64,000 bases of DNA from Iphione sp. A-MEVVRFRX5 (taxonomy: Eukaryota), in assembly GCA_976226885.1 (NCBI GenBank), contig OZ320314.1, positions 31,000,001 to 31,064,000 of the forward strand, given 5' to 3'. A model generated the notes under the pieces. The model did not search any database. It was not told the origin of the DNA and saw nothing but the letters and a program-made list of their open reading frames with translations. Positions 4,156 through 34,461 of this stretch are shown here, one piece after another (position 1 is the stretch's first letter; each line of letters opens with the position of its first letter). Both the position numbers and the translations under genes were made by a program.

Positions 4156-6889
4156 TATATCATAAAAATCAGGTCCGACAAATGGATCAGATAGATATTT
4201 TTGACGTACTTGTGTTTGTATAATATTTAAATATGGATATCGTTCATGTAAAGACGAGGCAAAACCAATACTTTGACCCAGTGCCGCCTTGGAGTCTCTG
4301 ACGAAAAAGAGGATATCATAGTTTACACCAAAATGGCAAGGAAAGGTATTATACTTGTACTGGTTAAAGCGTATGAATCCTGACAACCCACAAACCCGGA
4401 CAGCGTGGAATCTAAACCTTTAGCGGGCAAGCACTTATATTTCAATATTTCTGTGTGTTCCTCCACAGAAATATACACGGGCACCTTTAAATACAGTAGC
4501 GAAGATCAAGGGTATAGGAAATTTAGACCATCGAAGGAAAGGTTAGAAAATAATCAGCACGTTCATATCAGACCATTCAAGAGAAACGTACATTGGAATG
4601 AACTTTTCAGCCTGTGTGGTATAGGCCAACATTTTGTCCAAGGCTGAAGCTAAAAGATTTGTTATGGGCTGGCAGGTCAGCCGATTATGGATTTATCTAT
4701 GTGGATAACATGTGGGGAACTAGCTAAGTCCAACTGTCGAGGACACACGACAGATGAAGAGTGGTAGGCCACCGACATCAACCCATGTACACGTAGGACA
4801 GTATCTGCAATGGTCAGTCTCCAAATGGATCGCACATACACACGTAAGACAGTATCTGGAACGAGCAGTTTGCAAAGAGATCCAAACGAAGAGACTCCTC
4901 ATTTAGCACAGACATGTGTAAATATGAGAAAAGAGGGAAGGTCGATAAGCTGAATTGGAAACGATACTTAAAGACGAGACGATTCGGCGTTGGCTGGTCT
5001 GTTATAAGGCAAGTGCCAATGGAGAGGCCCGCGTCGGTAGATATAAACACATGTTCAAACTAACTGCGGGGTGGGGGACAGAAGTTCTCATAGGACTCAG
5101 GTCTCAGTAATGTCAGGCGCAACAACCTATACTGGGCAGTTTCACACGGACAAACATGTAACAAGGCGATTGATACTGCGAGGAAGGTAGGAACGAGCCT
5201 TTGAAAGGTAGACGCTGACCCCACCTTGGGAGGGACCAGAAATGTTCACGTCAGACGGATTGTCACGCCATCTATGGGGACGGCATGACGTTTACCAAAG
5301 CAGACATTTTGACATATCGGTATTGTATCGCGGGTAAAGCCATATAGATGGCTTTCACACAATATTTCAGAGGACGGGGCTGCAAATATTCTCTTTATTC
5401 GAACGACTTACCAATACTAAGGCTTCAAGCTGAATGAAGAAGAATGGCAAACATCCTCACCCCCGAAAATGATGAAATAGTTTTAGCACGCAGGACGATG
5501 AATGACCGAGTGTGGGCAGGTACCAGGGTCTTCACAGAAGATCAAGCCGCAACCCTGACAGGAGGAGGGGCTTTGAATAATCCCGACCAAATGAGGTTTC
5601 AGCACGCCACAAGATGTAGCGCAGTTGGATCGTGGGGTCAGCTAGCAGTGAAGAAGCGAAGCTGCTGTCATGAAAAATAGCCATCTTTTGCATGCACCTT
5701 ATGAGCAAGACTTGCAAATATCAGGCCATTTATTTACATTTGACATAGACGGATACATCTCTAGGAATGGTCAGCGTTGCCTCATTGAAAAAAAAGAATA
5801 AGATGGAAGTGAGGCGAACGGACATCGAACCGACATCGCGCAGAAGTAACACGAAGGGCCATAGAGCAAAAAAAAGAGAAAAACTTGAGAAATGGTGCAT
5901 CGCTCGCACACAAGACCCTACATGGACCTTAATGCGTTGACATCGGTACAGTATCGATGCCGAACGTACTTAATATGCGGCGTATCGACAGGGGAAACCT
6001 GAGAAAGTCGACACACCCTTGGGAGTTGAGACAGAAGGCGGGAAGAGGAGGACTGTACTGCCAAAACGTACGAGGCACGACACGTTGTGCGCCTGACACA
6101 GGTCGTATACGGGACTGCCACATGTCCACAAGGGCCGGCAGGCAGGGTGCGTGCACTCACATAGGAATACGTGGCCTGGGTGGGTGTTTCTCGACTACAG
6201 TTGCCATCAGAATCACCGCCACCACCTGGGGGCGATCTGTCTTATCTACATCAGCCTACTAGGCAACCACGGCACTGTGTTTAAAGCAGCTCCGCAAGAA
6301 ATGAGACTTATTGTGTCTGGAATGGTGTGTCGTATGAGTGCTGCTTATGGAGACTCACATGGCACCGGTACCATAACGAAGCCCCCACTTAATTCTTCAT
6401 AAGAGAGACTGTCCTACAGAGGAGGGGGGGGGGGGGCTAAGGGGCAAATCCACGTCTTCCTGAGAGACAATAAGTCACTACATAAGTCGGAGAAGGCCCT
6501 CCAGGACTTAGTGCCAGACGGCACCAAAGGGGCTTCTGCTATGCAAGCAAACAATCAGACAGCGCCATAAACAGGCACAGTCAATAAGAGAGTGGCAGAG
6601 CACAAACGGTCCCTACATTAGCAGACTGCAGGCCGTTTCTCATGCTCGACGTTCCCCCCCCCCCCCCCCCCCCATGCGACTTGGCAGATGGATGGGCAGC
6701 CGATGAGCGTAGCTTGGTGTAGAGACAGGGAGTCCATCGTGAGAAGTAAATTGAACTTTATTTCTTTTACATGACCTCTGCTGTAAAAGAGGCGTTTACA
6801 TCCAGACGCTCCTTGCCTGACACGTTTTTTTTATATATGTGGATGTGTTAATCAGAATAAATACCTCTATATGTGATTAGATGTACATA

Positions 6890-7135: not shown

Positions 7136-7927
7136 GCCAATGTAAAAGTTCAACAGGGTTGACTAGTGGTGGGAATTATATGGCCAAATAATGTACAGCT
7201 ACCGTTCTAGCACCTCTTCGACATAACTAAATGTATGTGAATAAAGCTCGTTCATTCTTTGTGTTCAGGATACATTATTATTACCACGTAAGCAGACAGT
7301 ACCGATCATGCCTACCAAACCATAACATTATTGAAAGTTCAGGACCGATATTGCCTACTTACAGGGTGCGTTGTGCGACGCCTACCAATCTGTCTAAATC
7401 ACTGGATATGAACATGTTTTGCCCCGTTCAAAGCGTTATGTATGGGCTCACTAACCAGCTAGCGCCGGCAGGAACGTCTATACATACTCCACCTACGGAA
7501 TGAGAGCGTTGTTCTGGATTAGGTAAGGGCAATCTGAAATTCTATCGGCTGTTTCATGAATAATTCACCACTAGGCCCCCCTATAACGGGTTAAGAAGCA
7601 TGACGTGATTATCAGGACTGCTGTTCTTACAGGGAACTACAACGGTACGGTCACAAGGGAGAGGCTGTCCCATCATGCTGTCCGTTAGTACATGCCAGAA
7701 AGCCCAAGGTAGGACCTAAATATCGCGGGCTGAATGAAAAGGGGAAAAAAGAGAGACGCAGGAGAAAAGGAGAGAGTGACAAAGAGACAGAGAGAGACAT
7801 ACGATTGGGTGAAGAGAATGACAGTAAATGAAAAAGAGGGGGAGATATGGGGAAAATCGGGTGAAAGTAAAGGGAAAAAGAATAAAGACGCGGGAAAGTC
7901 AACGAATAAGAGAGACATGAGAGAGAC

Positions 7928-7929
<2 letters not shown>

Positions 7930-7996
<67 letters not shown>
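7930..7996. repeat. (GA)n microsatellite inside a purine-rich low-complexity tract (~7725-8330)
   Basis: Directly visible uninterrupted AG run. It explains the spurious LSLSLS ORFs on the minus strand. Confidence 0.97.
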
Positions 7997-7999
<3 letters not shown>

Positions 8000-10900
8000 G
8001 GTAAATATAAGAGAAAGCAAAAAGTGAGAGAGAAAAAAATAAAGGGGGTCGCAGTGAATAAAAATATGGCAGACTGAGAGATGAAGAAAATGAAAGTGAA
8101 TGAATGAAAGTGAGAAAAAAAGAGAGAGAGAGAGATTGGGGTGAGGGGAGTGACAGTGAAACGGAGACAGAGATGCGGTGAAAAGGGTGAAAGTGAGCGA
8201 ATGAAATAGAGAGGAAATAAAAGAACGAGAATGCGAGAAAAAATGAGAGAGGGAAGGAGGGAGGAAGGGAGTGCTTTTAACAGTAAAAACGATGTGGTAC
8301 TGCGAGGCAACAAGACAGACATAGCTACATGAATGTATAGAATGAATCGAAAGAGGAAAACAGATTTATTGACAAATGAGCTGAACATATATGCATGGAG
8401 ACAAGGTTTTTCATTCGATGCTTATCTAGCCTTTTAGTGTAACAGGCAGCGCTAAAAGCCTAATGAGGAGGAGTACTTGATGTAGCTAACTAAACATCAA
8501 ATGATAATCTATAGGTTGAATCTTACGTAAAGCTTTCCTGTTCTCCATATATCAAGCTACTAATAAATGTTCTTAGTTTAACCACATATATTGATGTGGG
8601 ATGGCTGGACTGGGAGCAAATCCATCATAGCTATAGAAGTGCAGGGCTCTAATATATTTCCTTGCAGGTATAATTCGCACTTTATGATTACATACGTATG
8701 ATTCTACACTGGTTGCATGAGCTTCAGGATGTGGTCACTAACGAATCGTATTTAAGATGAAATGTGGATGATCCATTTTGTCAACTAAATAGTGCTGTTA
8801 CTAGCCGTTCTGGCTGCCTTCAGGTTACTGCGACTGATAAAGGCTACTTCTACATAAACATTCGAAACCGTGTCTTTCCAGATTCAAGTAATATTTCAGC
8901 TGAAGGCTATCAAGCTACAACATAGAGACAATTGCGAACTGTTGGCCAACCGCAAAGGAAAGTCTTGGTCAAAGTATTTTTTCCACAATTTGTATCTTGT
9001 TACTGTGGTAACATCCAGCGCAAAGATCATTGCGTCCAGCCATTGTGTATCATTATACAGATGTTTTGACAACATGGCCAGCATAGCACCAAACGGCACT
9101 AATTCTGTGAAAGGCTGTATATACACACGTATGTATATACACACAAACATATATGCAACGTTCGGCTCTTTTCATGAGCATTACGAGGCAGGTGCACCGG
9201 GTCTATATGAGACTGATGCACTTTACTGGGGAAACTTTTCTTCCGCCTCTATTTTATGCTTCAGCAATCGCATGACAAATAGCCCCGTTCGCTGTCAGAA
9301 CAAATACCCTGCGCATCCACAGGCATTAAATTACCAGCCACATTCACGCACCGCTTCCTACTCGCTCTCACTTAATGGTTGGTTCTGAGCGATAGAAGTG
9401 CTCTGTCTACTGAACTGTAAGGGAATATGATCGCTATGTTCCTATTAAATTGCAACTTTGTCTTACTTCCGGTATCACCGAGTAAAATGCGAACCCCAGG
9501 AAATAAAATGATGTGTTTGAGACATACAACGATGCTATTTTGTCATGTTGACAAGTCAACGTCTTACCGACAAAATAATTTAAAACCTGGTTATCTCTGT
9601 CATGCAGTTTTATGCCGCAGGAATAAATGTCTTTATATTCTCAGTTCTCACATCAACTGGCGTAAAGTATGATGCATTGCTGTTACAAATGTAAATCTCT
9701 CCCTGGGTCAGGACAGGATAACACTCCGTAATCTCTGATGAAAATAAATTCTATGAGAATCTTAACCTTGTAGTTATTTGTTTCTAATTCACTTGGATGG
9801 GAAATTCTGTGAATTTGGGATTTTCATCTTGCCAATCCGCCGATGTATGGCTGTGCCATTCATCGAACGATTCGCTGACTAGTTTCCCTGCAAATCAAAA
9901 ATGGAGCTACCCTGCCAAATTTAGTTTAATATTTTTGGTCGGGACAGCATTTCTCTTTAAGATAAACGGCTGTTCTTGATCTCTTTGGAAACCTGAGCAG
10001 ACTTTGGCATACGGGTGGAAATACAGGTAGCAGGATCTGACTGATCAGTCAGAGCGATCGGTTAAAAAGCCAGGTCGGGACACAGCAGAGACCAGCCCGA
10101 AAGCTCCAATCTTGTCGGTCGTTGTAACCATCTTCAGTCCAATACTGCCAGGGATGCCGTCCACATACAACAAGGTTAATTTAATCAGTGTGCTTGGCAA
10201 TGGTCCTGGTAGACAGAAGCCTGGAAGCCTCATCAATGACAGTCTTCCTTTCCAGGACAGAATATCTTCTTTTAATGAGACAGTGGCAATGAATGCGACA
10301 CAAAGCCATAATTCCTTATTTATTACTGTGAATTTGTCGAAGGATGCTATAGAATAAAATACATGAAAAAATGATAATTGATCACTTTCATCATAAATCC
10401 TGCTTTGGAGGCATCTGTTTATATAACGTAACTATATATTGTTGTCTATCAGCTGGACAATTGTTTGTGTATAAAATGCCAAAGACAGTTCTTCCCAGAA
10501 GTATTAATTGTCTAGTCACGATAGACATACTTATGTATAGTTTCTATAGTATCATGAGGAATATTATCTTTCTTCGTACTGCTGCACTGTCCTCCTAGCT
10601 CGATCCGACATTTTAAAATGCTCTGTTTCTTTTGTATATAAAATGGCCTGTTTCCTACTGCAGGTGGTCCACACACCTCAGGCAGTAATTGGTCGCTCAT
10701 GCATTCCTCCCAGGGCAGAGATGATTATCCGCTGAGCTGGTGCTTCCAGCTGCTTTCCCGTGGTGCCTATGGCGGCATTGACGTCCAGGGAGGCAATCAA
10801 ATTTCTATCCTACAATCAGACGCTGATGGATTATATGTTGAGATGGGAAAGGCAATTTAGTCCAGCATGAACTCCGCAAATATATTCATTAAAGCACCTG

Positions 10901-27234: not shown

Positions 27235-27394
27235 TTTCATGGAGGTTTAGGCATATTGGTAGAAATGGTGCAGTTTTTCATGGAGGTTGAGGCATAATGG
27301 TCAAAATTGTGCAGTTTTTAATGGAGGTTGAGGCATATCAGTCGAAATTGTGCAGTTTTTCATGGAGGCTGAGGCATATCAGTAGAAATTGTGT
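27235..27394. repeat. 41-bp minisatellite, 4 copies
   Basis: (C/A)ATGGAGG starts at 27238, 27279, 27320 and 27361. The unit is ~CATGGAGGTTGAGGCATATCAGTAGAAATTGTGCAGTTTTT. Confidence 0.92.
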
Positions 27395-28675: not shown

Positions 28676-29505
28676 TTAAATAAAAACTTATTTTGCCTTT
28701 TATAAACCGCTGAGCACAAACCGTATAGATGAGAGTGTGATTGATTTGGAAATCACCCTACGCGAAATAATCATAGACGAAGGTGGAGAGGCAGCGTCAT
28801 GCGAAGATACAGTGTCCCTGTTTTACTTGCGTTAACTGTTCTATACTCCATAAGCAACCTAATGTACATATCATATAAATAAGGTTGATTAGTAGAGGGT
28901 TTCCAATCCACTCTATGAGACCTACTACGTCATCATGACTAGATACTTGCCTTCAATACTAGGTTACAGACATTCAGTTAAAGGTATCTAACGTAATGGC
29001 CCTTTCATTCACACAGCTACTGTCAGGCCGGTGCCCACGGGGTGGTTACATATATTACACAAATGTATTGACGAAACTGCACTTATTGTCCAGCTTGGAA
29101 TGACAAGTCAATAGAAGGGCGCAAGTGGTCACTGGTCAACCCATTCTTGGCATGGACAGTAGTAAATGTGAGATTATTGGATGACATTGTTTGCACTAAC
29201 TGGCAAACGACTGGCTGTGGCGGGCTTGCAATGGTTAACACTTGCGACAAATTTGTTCGCGGTGTGCTGTTGCTTGTTCAGGCCCATATGTTCAATTCCC
29301 TCGCAATCGAGTTCCTCCCTCCTGATGGAGCATTCCATGTGCGTAACAAAACGCAATAGGCCAACGGCTTTACGTATTTATCGGTGGAAAAGACTCAGCG
29401 TTAATAAGGTAAGAAGGATGATTGAAAGGACTCGACTATTGGCCTACTACTGGCCAACCCATTTAATAACCTGCCAGGTTAAACATTTTCTATTTTATGT
29501 ATTGG

Positions 29506-29634
29506 ATACAGCACGAGGGCGTGCATGTATGCGTTATATTGGCACGGTTTGGATTAGCTGCACGAGACGAAGTCGAGTGTGGCTAATCCAAACCGTGACA
29601 ATCTAACGCATACATACACGCCCAAGTGCTGTAT
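29506..29634. repeat. 129-bp imperfect palindrome (63-bp arms, GAA loop at 29569-29571)
   Basis: Manual pairing gives ~54 Watson-Crick pairs, 2 adjacent G-T pairs and 7 mismatches, including a tandem GA/GA next to GAC-GAA-GTC. Confidence 0.95.
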
Positions 29635-29797
29635 GTAGCTTAAAGCACGGCTCCACACGTACACATAATCAATGAACCATGACTGAAAGAACCAATAAGA
29701 ACCTCTTCATTACTTGCTTCATTAGAATATTCACATAGATTGCTTTGGTTCAAATTACAAACCCCAACCGGTACACTGCTGTCACGACGGTCTAACC

Positions 29798-31464
29798 ATG
29801 GACTTGTTGGATGTCCCAAATTTCGAGATCGAATTAGATCTATGCACTCAAGCAGATCAAATGGAAAGAGAGTACTTATCACAAACCCAAACTCAGGAGT
29901 CTAGTCAAGAAGATGATCTTGGTAGTCGATTTGCACCTGTTCAATCCGATCATGAGTTTAAGGCTTTCATTGCATCGAGGATACCCAAGAACACGCAACA
30001 ATCATCCAATTGGGCTCACAATATATACCGTGAGTGGAGAACATGGAGGAATGGTCATAGCAAATCTCCTGGTGATAGGAAATGGCCTGTCCCCGCCTTG
30101 ACCACTGAGAAGTTGGACTTATTGGACTACTGGTTGGCCCGTTTTGTAACGGAAATTCGGAAGAAGGACGGAGACGACTATCCCCCAGGTAAGCAGCATT
30201 TCATATGCCTATCTATAGCATGGGTGGGGGGGGGACCTCATATCAGGAAAGGTTTTGAAGATTTTATGTCTTATTTGTTCCAGGTACACTTACCAACATA
30301 GCCGCCTCTATTCAAAGATATATGCGGGATGTCCTGGGCAGAGCGGACATCTGGTTGTTGAAGAAGGACGGCCCACACTTCAAGGTTTTCAGAGACGCCT
30401 TGGACGCTCGGAGGAAATTGCTTATTTCTCAGGGGGTTGGCACTCAACCAACACGTGCAGACCCCATATCCATGGACGATGAAGTTGAACTCTGGGAGTC
30501 TGGAGTAATTGGATTTCATTCCGCTCAGTCATTGTCATATGCTTGTTATTTCTATAATTGCAAGCTGTTTGGTTTTCGAGCCAGGGACGAACATGCTAAT
30601 CTAATGGTCGAGCAGTTCACCTTCGGGACCGAACGAGATGGGTCACAATTTCTGCAATTCAATGGTCGTCTTGCAAAAACTGTCACAGGAAAAGTCAGCT
30701 CGAAATCCACTCCAAGGGTTGTAAAGCACTACGCTCAGCCTGAGAATGAACGATGTGTAGTCAAGATTTTTAGGAAGTATATTGCATTGATTCCCCCTTC
30801 AGGCAGGTTTTACCGTAGACCCATGGCGAACGTTAATGGCCATATAATATTCAGTGTTCAGCATGTCGGTGTGAACAAATTGTCACAGTATATGGCCTCT
30901 ATGTTCCAGTCTGCTGGGATCGACACGGAGGGCCGGAACATTAGCGGCCATTCCGGCAAGGTGACGTGTTGCACTACTCTTTACGAGCATGACTTTGACG
31001 AACAGGCAATCACCTCGCGAAGTGGCCATAGGTCCAACGCTGTGCGTTTGTACAAGAGGCCATCCATTGAGCTTGAAAAACGCATTAGTAATTCACTCCA
31101 ACCACCCCCGCCCAAAGCCACCAAGCCTGCCACCATTACTCGTCCTGAACCAACCATGAATCATGCCACCAGTCATAAACCCTCACATTCCACCCCTATC
31201 AGGACCCCACCTGTGCCCTCCCCGTCCACTAATGTAATGCCGGTCACCCCAATCAATCCGCACACATCCAAGGATCAAATCGTCCAAACAGAAATGACCC
31301 CCCCTCTCCAAGACAGCAATCACTCACTACCTCCCTCTCCCGCCCAAGGTACCATTCAAATGGCCTCTTTGATTGATCGGAAAATGTTTACGGTTGTCGT
31401 TCCCTCAGATGTTTATCAGGTCGCCATAATCAAGGACGACAAGAAGGTTGTAGTTCAAATTTAA
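29798..31464 (+). CDS. DUF3504/Crypton tyrosine recombinase, 523 aa, join(29798..30188,30284..31464); family related to the ZMYM2/3/4, QRICH1 and KCTD1 C-terminal domain
   Basis: Kozak accATGG. Exon 1 has RIPKNTQQSSNWAHNIYREW..LDYWLARFVTEIRKKDGDDYPP, which splices in frame to GTLTNIAASIQRYMR. Catalytic-type residues are R229 (FGFRARDEH), K262, H353-x-x-K356 (SGHSGK), H379 (SGHRS) and Y387 (VRLYKRP). These are followed by a Pro/Thr-rich linker and a short hydrophobic C-terminal segment. There are no stops or frameshifts. Confidence 0.92.
30189..30283 (+). other. 95-bp phase-1 GT-AG spliceosomal intron
   Basis: The donor is CAG|GTAAGC and the acceptor is TTATTTGTTCCAG|G. Removal joins the ORF at 29798 to the ORF at 30322 in frame and restores the family motif YPPxTL. 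Confidence 0.9.
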
Positions 31465-31716
31465 CTTGTTTTATATGTTTTCCTACTGTAATGTGTGTGC
31501 AATTAATCTCCTTTGCTGTATTTGATCATTTCAGCGATTCTTTAAGTCAAACAGTATTTATCCGTCTAATGCCATTCTTTTTACAGTCATAATATTGCAA
31601 TTATTCCCATTCTACCACGGTTCTTTCGAAGTATTTTTATGTCTTGCTATATTAATTATATGTACATTCTATTTATATTCATCCTGCTATTTATAATTTG
31701 TGTTTCACCCGTCATG

Positions 31717-31722
31717 AATAAA
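31717..31722 (+). promoter_or_regulatory. Candidate polyadenylation signal of the recombinase gene
   Basis: AATAAA about 250 bp after the stop codon, within an AT-rich 3-prime UTR and inside the element. Confidence 0.5.
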
Positions 31723-32229
31723 AACTCTTTTTACATTAATTCTAACTATGATTTCTTTTCCTTCCATCCAACACTCTAACAACGCTCACCCCAATGACAT
31801 ATGCAACCCACTAATCCACAGCTAACGACACCTCCGGCCCTCATGTATTCAATGCGGCAGCTTGTTTGTGTCACCTACCCACCCGTGCTGTATGCGAAAT
31901 AGTCGCACTGCACGGCTACATAGGCCTAAAGAGAAAAAAAGATGGCCGCCGTGCTTTAAATGGTAATAGTCAATTGAGAAGTTAACTTCACTTCATTGCA
32001 ATAATTGATCCTAAAATGAATAATCTATTTACTTAAAGCAGGACAATCAAAAAAGAAAATCAGAGGAAATGAATTGCAACACTCAATATTAGCCGAATTC
32101 GAGCAGGAGTGCTTTCCGCCTATTGACGGATGTGCAAGGAATGGTATTCTAAAAAAAATCGTTCTTGCAAGTGAGCATGCTTTAATCTGATGTCTCTTTG
32201 AGGCCCATTACTTTACATAAGTATGTCGT

Positions 32230-34150
32230 ATAATTTGTTACTACAAGTTTTGTATTGACATAACGTTATACACGCCACTCATACTCAAGAGGATGAGTCT
32301 ATAAAGACATAAAAGCCAAAACATACGATAACTATGCGGATTCAAATTGCTTTCGTCGCTCCTATGGTAGTTTGCGTTCTGCAGCGGTCGGAAGTCATCA
32401 TGGACTGACAACATTCAATAGTCTCCTTCACTGCAAGCACTCAGTCTAAGAAATTCAGGAAGAAAATAGTGTTACCTTCCAAGAAGGGGCTCCTGTACGG
32501 CTTCTCCTTGAAGTTGTTCATGGCGGTGCAGGGCCTGCCGTTCGCTGATGGCCGCCAACGAAAGGTCCCGCACCGGCGCGCTCACGATGACCGTCAGTAA
32601 CCGCGCGCCAAGCTGCTGTGCGGCGCCCCCTGGACAGTATGCTTGACACTAATTAACCTGGTCACGTGCCAGTCGGACCCGCGAAGCCAATTGGCACTCG
32701 CTAGGCCGATATCGACCGGGTCAGGAAATGAGTGAAGGAATGAGTCCGTCCGTCAAGCGAATCAAGCGCAGCCGTCTGACAAAGGCTGGGAAGCGTCGAT
32801 GGGGGCGGGCGGAAACTGGTCACTAAACCGTCGCATCCGCTAGAACGTCCGATCAACACTGGTAGGGGAAACTTAGGACACTTCCAATCTGCGTTCGATG
32901 GGTACGATGTCCGGCGTTGTACTGAATACAGTCCACTCGATTCAGCGTTATATTTAAGCGTCGTGGGTGATGATGCTATTCTCAGAATGCCAAACTGAGA
33001 CCTTCAGAGTAAAATCAATATGCTCCGCCGCAGGAATTGTCCGAATGTGCAATGAGTTAATATTACGTTAAGCTAGTGCAGCTGTGTTAGATTTCGGCCT
33101 GAAACATAATCAGCATTAAAAATCATTGCCACCGCATATTTGGCTTAATTGCAGTTCTTCTCGGTCCGCTCCCATCTAGTCAATACACCCTGTGAGAAAA
33201 CCCGCTGCGCTATGTTAACGGTAAAAGAAAGGATGAGATGCCGTTCCGGACGGAGCACAGGCCGTGTAGGCTTTAGTGTTGTTAGAAGCCCGTGTAAGGA
33301 GATATATCCAGCCTTCAGATTGAATACGCTGGAGAACTAAGTGGGGGCTAGACTGTTTGAACTGTGACCAAAGGGCCACTTGATGCACATCCCCTATGGA
33401 AACGTTCTTGATGGACCTTGGCTTGGCATCGCTGTTGCCAGGGCCGCCTCTTAAAGCACTATGCAATCTTGCCGAAATTCTCTGAGGGGAACCGCCTGGA
33501 AATTGAGAAACCCTTTCCCGTCCGGCTATCAGCTAGCCTTGGTGGAAGTTTCTGACGGTAACAAAATACACTTTTCGTGCCCTGTCCCCAGGCTATGTCA
33601 AACACCGAAACACTGTCCGTTGCCTTTCAGGACATAAACGGCTTTTACTGTGGTAATAAGGCACGAACCTTTGTGTGAGGCCCTCAGCAACCAACGCCTC
33701 CCAGCTTGTGGTCTGTTGCTCCGAGTGGTTCTGGCAGCGGCAAATGCAGTGCCAGAAGCAGCAGCAGAGGCTTCGGTGGCGGCTGTGTTGGCAGCTGTGG
33801 AGGTTCCGTCTGCCCTGCTGGTGGCAGCAGCAGCACCACCAACAGTGGTCAGGGCGTTAGCTTTGACGGTCCTAGAGCCGACACAGCCGGTGGGAGACCA
33901 CGGGAGACTGAGGCCTTGCTTGTCGGCTGTCCTGTGTCTGCCTGCCTGTTTGCTGACTTAGAGGAGCGGGTATCTTCCAACGTGTGATGATGAACTCGCT
34001 CGTCTTGTCCTAAATCCGTAATCCTACGGCCACCTCTTCTTGATGATAGCATTCATAGCCCAGTCCCAGCCAAAGGCCAGTCTTACTTTGTCCTCCCTAC
34101 CGAGATGCCAAAAGCAGCGGCGGCACCCGCTGGCTCAAAAAATATCTTAC
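32230..34150 (-). pseudogene. Unassigned degenerate coding-like island (possibly a decayed transposase or viral gene)
   Basis: GC-richer than the flanks, with GC3-biased minus-strand segments (AMNNFKEKPYRSPFLEGNTIFFLNFLD; IKNVSIGDVHQVALWSQF; FGWDWAMNAIIKKRWP; an Ala/Thr-rich stretch). Multiple stops are present and the identity is not established. Confidence 0.3.

Positions 34151-34424: not shown

Positions 34425-34461
<37 letters not shown>
34425..34461. repeat. (GT)n microsatellite
   Basis: Directly visible. Confidence 0.97.

Follow-up and report, generated by a model that had tools for sequence, protein, structure and literature searches.

A probable autonomous CryptonA transposon with a terminal palindrome and conserved end sites in the genome of Iphione sp.

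Background

Among eukaryotic DNA transposons, Cryptons, which are built around a tyrosine recombinase, are the class that is least understood. In animals, elements of the CryptonA group are known from hemichordates and molluscs as well as other invertebrates; they feature a single tyrosine-recombinase gene, containing introns and encoding a DUF3504 catalytic domain, carry no reverse transcriptase (RT) and are accompanied by non-autonomous derivatives (PMC3212892, PMC13465315). The survey of Kojima & Jurka in 2011 described animal Cryptons as devoid of both terminal repeats and a C-terminal domain (PMC3212892), and in the Glomhopper paper of 2026 the boundaries of CryptonA could not be defined (PMC13465315). 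In this work, we describe an element of this group, located at about 29495-31962 of a stretch of 64,000 nucleotides from Iphione sp. A-MEVVRFRX5 (assembly GCA_976226885.1, contig OZ320314.1, positions 31,000,001 to 31,064,000), here called the window. The features just listed are all found in its lineage, which adds to CryptonA as published a terminal palindrome, short inverted end sites, a subterminal repeat, a C-terminal motif of about 25 residues and a Lys at the position of the second catalytic arginine (Arg-II). No description of palindromic CryptonA ends was found in the literature searched in full text; the element is a member of a known group, with an end architecture apparently undescribed.

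The earlier note on this DNA had held the mechanism of Cryptons to be little characterised, a statement which is outdated: the first transposition of a Crypton to be observed, that of CryptonF-1_cRei, took place in Chlamydomonas mutation-accumulation lines; this element has a 5-bp terminus CACCG and a target CAYCG, and its transposition and clean excision now back the proposed Crypton cycle (PMC9977147). Short direct repeats at the termini are known for CryptonF and CryptonS, and none have been reported for animal Cryptons; similar repeats are seen at the junctions of relatives of the window element. CryptonF-1_cRei, however, belongs to another Crypton group and host kingdom, no palindrome was described in it, and its activity was demonstrated, whereas the window element is known from its sequence.

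DIRS1-type retrotransposons also have a tyrosine recombinase, together with inverted terminal repeats and an internal complementary region. The window element resembles them in combining a tyrosine recombinase with an internal segment which repeats, in inverted orientation, the sequence of the joined ends; unlike them, it is a DNA element, without RT, RNase H or methyltransferase, and only short segments match, of 9-12 nt plus a palindrome arm. The Cre/loxP, XerCD/dif, IntI/attC and CTX-phage attP systems share with it the catalytic fold, predicted here, and a site layout in which a 6-8 bp spacer separates two short inverted arms, and the long imperfect palindrome recalls the folded substrates of integron attC and CTX attP. 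In contrast to these systems, the window gene is eukaryotic, spliced and has a Lys at Arg-II, and its sites, duplex or folded, are putative. Finally, the domesticated genes ZMYM2/3/4, QRICH1, KCTD1 isoform b and KIAA1958 similarly combine DUF3504 with QRICH1-type N-terminal domains, but they are single-copy and syntenic and lack the catalytic Tyr and other residues, while the window protein keeps its active site and lies between transposon ends.

Results

We conclude, with good though not full confidence, that the region around 29495-31962 is a structurally complete, autonomous CryptonA-type tyrosine-recombinase DNA transposon, endowed with family-specific cis sites. Loci used for comparison were L001, L003, L004 and L005, all from ENA assembly ERZ25767047, L002 from Lingula and L019 (CM083797.1) from Ptychodera flava. 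L001 and L004 are 65% and 63% identical to the window protein, with saturated synonymous divergence (dS), and L019 is 56-58% identical.

The element lies on the forward strand and measures about 2.47 kb, each limit being defined to within about 6 nt by the point where similarity to L001, L004, an insert in the L003 intron and L019 ends. This similarity starts at TA(T/C)GT..T.GATA, about 10 nt before the terminal palindrome, and stops just past CCGTG.T.TAA, after the 3' terminal site; the limits proposed in the earlier note, 29500-31965, agree with these ends to about 6 nt.

The gene is composed of two exons. Exon 1 (coding sequence 29798-30188) encodes residues 1-130 and the first base of Gly131, corresponding to an acidic N-terminus and the start of a QRICH1-like N-terminal domain; exon 2 (30284-31464, with the stop codon at 31462-31464) encodes the rest of this domain, the catalytic domain, a Pro/Ser/Thr-rich linker and a conserved C-terminal motif. 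The intervening 95-nt intron (30189-30283), of the GT..AG type with AG at 30282-30283, falls in phase 1 within the Gly codon that follows Y-P-P. Joined, the exons give 1572 nt coding for 523 aa without internal stops, the longest open reading frame (ORF) of the window; the unspliced frame ends after 167 aa. The start codon at 29798 lies in the context aaccATGG, with A at -3 and G at +4, and a poly(A) signal, AATAAA, is found at 31717-31722, 253 nt past the stop codon. Intron position and phase are the same in L001, L003, L004 and the Lingula locus, that is in five loci including the window, and the predicted spliced product regains a YPPxTLxxI motif, unbroken in intronless relatives (Ptychodera P0013 and contigs L007 and L009). 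Removal of the intron by splicing is therefore well supported by comparison.

Exon 2 matches the Pfam profile of DUF3504 with an E value of 1.1e-18 and, weakly, that of Phage_integrase (E 9e-4); exon 1 produces a weak match to the QRICH1 N-terminal domain (E 1e-3). The recombinase is the sole element-encoded protein with a Pfam match in 29495-31962, and its assignment to CryptonA, as opposed to the DIRS/Ngaro recombinases, is based on the DUF3504 match (E 1e-18) together with homologues carrying PF12012 and PF25561. A word-indexed search collected 63 homologues, the best being 62-65% identical, from Lingula, Ptychodera, Mytilus, other bivalves, invertebrate assemblies and metagenome contigs, and an exhaustive search produced 3348 representative clusters. 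An AlphaFold (AF2) model, spanning only residues 132-411 of the exon-2 product (predicted local distance difference test, pLDDT, 84), retrieved Cre as the best structural match (E 2e-8, template modelling score, TM, 0.55), followed by XerH, XerA, the Tn1549 integrase, IntI and human QRICH1. At the sequence level, the QRICH1 structure 9hjt was the sole match in the PDB (profile E 5e-17), the lipocalin matches of the same search being rejected as noise.

The active-site signature, R229-E233-K262-H353-K356-H379-Y387 (exon-2 numbering plus 131), is complete. The catalytic codons lie, on the forward strand, at 30577-79 (R229), 30676-78 (K262), 30949-51 (H353), 30958-60 (K356), 31027-29 (H379) and 31051-53 (Y387). 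Across 33 sequences R229, E233, H234, K262, H353, S354, G355, K356, G378 and R389 are invariant, and H379 and Y387 nearly so. We take K356 to occupy the Arg-II position, the spacings being 3, 23 and 8 residues as compared with 3, 23 and 9 in Cre (HxxR...[H/W]...Y). All 33 close homologues have Lys at this position; among 135 representatives with all sites aligned, Lys occurs in 101 and Arg in 31, the other catalytic sites being about 95% conserved. Since Lys prevails in this way, its presence at Arg-II is, judging from the alignment, a family trait reflecting a natural K/R alternation, and no lesion of the window copy.

All the features of the gene read in the earlier note are confirmed: an intact, spliced, 523-aa DUF3504 recombinase of a Crypton-type element, with an exon junction at 30188/30284, a Kozak start, a poly(A) signal and R-K-H-(K)-H-Y catalytic-type residues. 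The profile comparison with DUF3504 and the structural comparison with Cre/XerD-type recombinases, on which that reading could be checked, have both been run, with the outcomes given above.

Overall, the recombinase may be divided into an N-terminal, core-binding-like domain, a catalytic domain similar to that of Cre and, at the C-terminus, a short conserved motif. This motif, ..VP..V..V.I.K.GK...L, is found family-wide in the last 25 residues or so, beyond the linker, which is variable and rich in Pro, Ser and Thr. At 3 of 63 highly conserved columns the window protein differs from the consensus, a count that lies in the range seen for other intact members. The ratio of nonsynonymous to synonymous divergence (dN/dS) between paralogues is 0.05-0.09; for the window against its relatives, saturation of dS yields no age estimate.

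The 5' end of the element is occupied by a 129-bp terminal palindrome (29506-29634), with arms at 29506-29568 and 29572-29634 separated by a 3-nt centre, each arm containing an outer motif, X (ATACAGCAC), and an inner one, M (TGTATGCGTTATA). The arms are 86% complementary, and as single-stranded DNA the palindrome is predicted to fold with an energy of -59.5 kcal/mol (z -13). Right after it, on the forward strand, lies the 12-mer Z(+), TTAAAGCACGGC (29640-29651), whose inverted partner, Z(-), GCCGTGCTTTAA (31948-31959, reverse strand), is the 3' terminal site, the two matching perfectly over 12 of 12 positions. Ahead of Z(-), at 31885-31915 on the forward strand, a 3' subterminal copy of M (GTGCTGTATGCGAAATAGTCGCAC..CACGGC) repeats directly the inner segment of the palindrome's left arm, with 80% identity over 20 nt. 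The inner end of the palindrome and Z together make up an internal lox-like site (29626-29648), GTGCTGTA-TGTAGCT-TAAAGCAC, with 8-bp inverted arms, matched at 7 of 8 positions, and a 7-bp spacer. The reverse complement of this site presents the same arms, in the same order, as the 3' end (GTGCTTTA) joined to the 5' end (TACAGCAC); the spacing at a real circle joint, about 9-12 nt, would be unlike the 7-nt spacer of the internal site. At the 5' junction (29491-29501, forward strand), TTTTATG-TATT forms an imperfect direct repeat with TTAAATGGTAAT at 31955-31967; by analogy with the 11-bp and 9-bp repeats found at the junctions of the Ptychodera copy and of the L003 insert, respectively, 29491-29501 is a probable crossover or core region.

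Within the 64 kb the Z 12-mer occurs only at its two sites, against 0.18 occurrences expected. However, by our own estimate, about 0.4 inverted 12-mer pairs are expected by chance within 3.5 kb, so that the pair alone is not significant and the weight of the evidence on Z comes from the relatives. The "sharply defined inverted boundary arms" of the earlier note are real as far as the palindrome and the perfect 12-nt pair are concerned, but the pair connects an internal site to the 3' end and not the two outer termini. A plain terminal inverted repeat made by the 12-bp pair was likewise discarded, because its left member is located internal to the palindrome and a non-autonomous derivative carries the palindrome.

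The same architecture is found in the relatives, despite the saturation of synonymous sites. A palindrome precedes the gene in L001, L004 and L019, with a common outer GATA..(C/A)ACGAG (X) and a common inner TA(T/C)G.G.TATA (M), followed 3-5 nt later by Z; this motif returns, as its reverse complement, 300-630 nt past the stop codon, with a direct M copy ahead. This 3' M-copy block is conserved in L001, L003, L004, L005, the L003 insert and L019. The Z(+)/Z(-) pairs read TTAAAGCACGG / CCGTGCTTTAA in the window, TTAAATCACGG / CCGTGTTTTAA in L001, TTATACCACGA / CCGTGGTATAA in L004, TTATACCACGG / CCGTGGTATAA in the L003 insert and TCACACGGCC / GGCCGTGTGA in Ptychodera L019, and the two members co-vary across these five. 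The lox-like site has the same layout in the window, L004, the L003 insert and L001, its arms matching at 7 of 8 positions in both of the first two, 6 in the L003 insert and 5 in L001. In L019, an intronless CryptonA copy, both junctions (2681-2691 and 4649-4659) bear a perfect 11-bp direct repeat, ACAGGATTTAC, and the palindrome has 47-nt arms, 96% complementary. The conserved end sequences are probably recombination sites.

The motifs are not found everywhere. In the Lingula locus gene and intron are conserved, and X, M and Z were not found; similarly, none of 13 related loci from a metagenome scan, with 30-61% best-segment identity, contains X or Z. A related Crypton on a marine metagenome contig (L020) has an intron with nested palindromic repeats at 1346-1581, with arms of 60 and 50 nt and repeated CACTT.ACCCTTGTCCATAATG units, which may be an insertion resembling miniature inverted-repeat transposable elements. 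L005 (contig ctg38948) retains an intact ORF in exon 2, together with M and Z at the 3' end; neither exon 1 nor the 5' palindrome was detected, and L005 is probably a 5'-truncated copy.

ERZ25767047 contains four paralogues, on four different contigs. Within one of them, a reversed element of about 600 bp (L003 3311-3907, contig ctg38450) is lodged in the intron of the resident Crypton copy. Its 3' and 5' ends are 94% and 91% identical to those of the L004 type, whereas identity between the two host genes reaches only about 76%, and it is flanked on both sides by AT(A/G)CGTAGT, a 9-bp repeat matched at 8 of 9 positions. By these sequence features the insert is a non-autonomous Crypton derivative. 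This derivative establishes transposition in the lineage and places the palindrome within the mobile unit; on this comparative evidence, the family is mobile in ERZ25767047.

The gene had also been presented as the only uninterrupted one among 64 kb of decayed repeats. No other ORF of the window exceeds 250 aa, but the decayed surroundings could not be confirmed, the window being almost without internal repeats. Ten other long ORFs gave no Pfam match, and neither Pfam analysis nor inspection of the flanking ORFs found RT, RNase H or other domain-bearing ORFs in or beside 29495-31962. The second longest ORF, 245 aa with an ATG start (7651-8388, reverse strand), has no Pfam match. Self-comparison of the flanks found no empty site, and a search for tRNAs and tandem repeats around the element gave nothing relevant. 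A tandem repeat with a 41-nt unit (3.9 copies, 88% matches) occurs 2 kb upstream, at 27235-27393. The region directly downstream of the element, 32001-34000, is the most GC-rich of the window (0.50 versus about 0.40), and beyond it, at 34425-34461, lies a (GT)18 microsatellite.

Discussion

Several observations weigh against a complete and functional transposon in the window. The direct repeat at its junctions is imperfect, with about 9 of 12 positions matched and one gap, unlike the perfect 11 bp of Ptychodera, and the arms of the palindrome are only 86% complementary. Host-side half-sites next to X and Z match at 3-4 of 8 positions only and were judged not meaningful. Neither tblastn nor blastn found a second copy within the window, the exact protein encoded by the exon-2 ORF is not on record, and no near-identical protein occurs among the homologues. 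In the C-terminal motif, an Asp replaces the Gly present in all of 15 relatives, and a Lys at Arg-II weakens catalysis in some studied recombinases. Most of these points would be accounted for by an intact-looking but immobile relic, in which recombinase or sites are dead and the frame is open by chance, or because a recent insertion was followed by silencing. We assign to this explanation a minor, though not negligible, probability: the ORF spans 1572 nt, all catalytic residues are in place, the departures from conserved columns are few (3 of 63), Z(+) and Z(-) match at 12 of 12 positions, and relatives which appear mobile carry imperfect palindromes too. By our rough estimate, a 1.57-kb ORF rarely stays open past about 1-2% neutral divergence, hence the window copy would be either recent or under selection. 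The earlier note read it as young and possibly active, which may be correct.

Selection raises the question of a host gene derived from a Crypton and kept for a cellular function, as with ZMYM, QRICH1 and KCTD1. The strong purifying selection in the family, the conserved intron position and the fact that QRICH1 is the only sequence-level match in the PDB would suit such domestication. In domesticated DUF3504 genes, however, the Tyr and the second Arg have disappeared (PMC3212892), while the window protein retains Tyr, both His, Lys-beta and Arg-I. The Lys at Arg-II is common to relatives that appear mobile, the non-coding end sites are conserved and co-vary, and ERZ25767047 contains several paralogues at unrelated loci as well as a non-autonomous derivative, all of which make domestication unlikely, and by a wide measure. 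Slimmer still is the chance that the 2.47-kb unit belongs to a larger composite, be it a retroelement of the DIRS kind or a Crypton array, tandem or composite, its limits being internal landmarks. The element does contain, in its interior, an inverted copy of its end junction, which recalls the internal complementary region of DIRS elements, but the flanking ORFs have no RT, RNase H or other domain, similarity to the relatives ends at the proposed limits, and the two ends carried by the L003 derivative are exactly these. A DIRS-like retrotransposon proper was rejected on the absence of RT, RNase H and methyltransferase ORFs beside the recombinase.

An autonomous CryptonA element with its own cis sites would move by a cycle of the type proposed by Goodwin, excision as a circle being followed by conservative integration. 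The recombinase, bound at X and Z as putative binding arms, would bring the two ends into synapsis, with M acting as an accessory site. At the 3'-to-5' joint of the circle, Z(-) and X(+) would meet as a second lox-like site, inverted with respect to the internal one, and integration would take place at a short core near TA(T/C)|GT, the likely neighbourhood of the crossover.

A more speculative extension, which we regard as possible but doubtful, is that recombination in this CryptonA lineage takes place at a long palindromic site. Once the circle is formed, both Z sites would flank the 129-bp palindrome, creating a near-palindrome of about 160 bp with two mirror-image lox-like crossover sites; alternatively, when extruded or single-stranded, the same DNA would fold into a hairpin whose centre is an unpaired bubble, in the manner of integron attC or CTX-phage attP. 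The sequence is compatible both with a duplex site in which crossover may occur at two mirror-image positions and with a folded substrate of the attC or CTX-attP kind, and the palindrome may also have a role as a promoter or in replication. A long palindromic site, if true, would account for the presence, inside the element, of an inverted copy of the circle junction, similar to the DIRS internal complementary region, and for the co-variation of the sites. Animal Cryptons would then also have their first defined pair of recombinase and site, and a compact candidate for a eukaryotic integrase/excisionase would be at hand.

Conclusion

For the Cryptons, the analysis supplies cis-site candidates at the nucleotide level, namely X, M, Z, a lox-like core and a terminal palindrome, conserved among the window genome, ERZ25767047 and a hemichordate. 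The practical worth of the enzyme as a site-specific recombinase of eukaryotic origin hinges on its activity. With an enzyme of 523 aa and about 250 bp of defined DNA, the circle model becomes directly testable, and the structure of Crypton ends is tied to the internal complementary region of DIRS elements.

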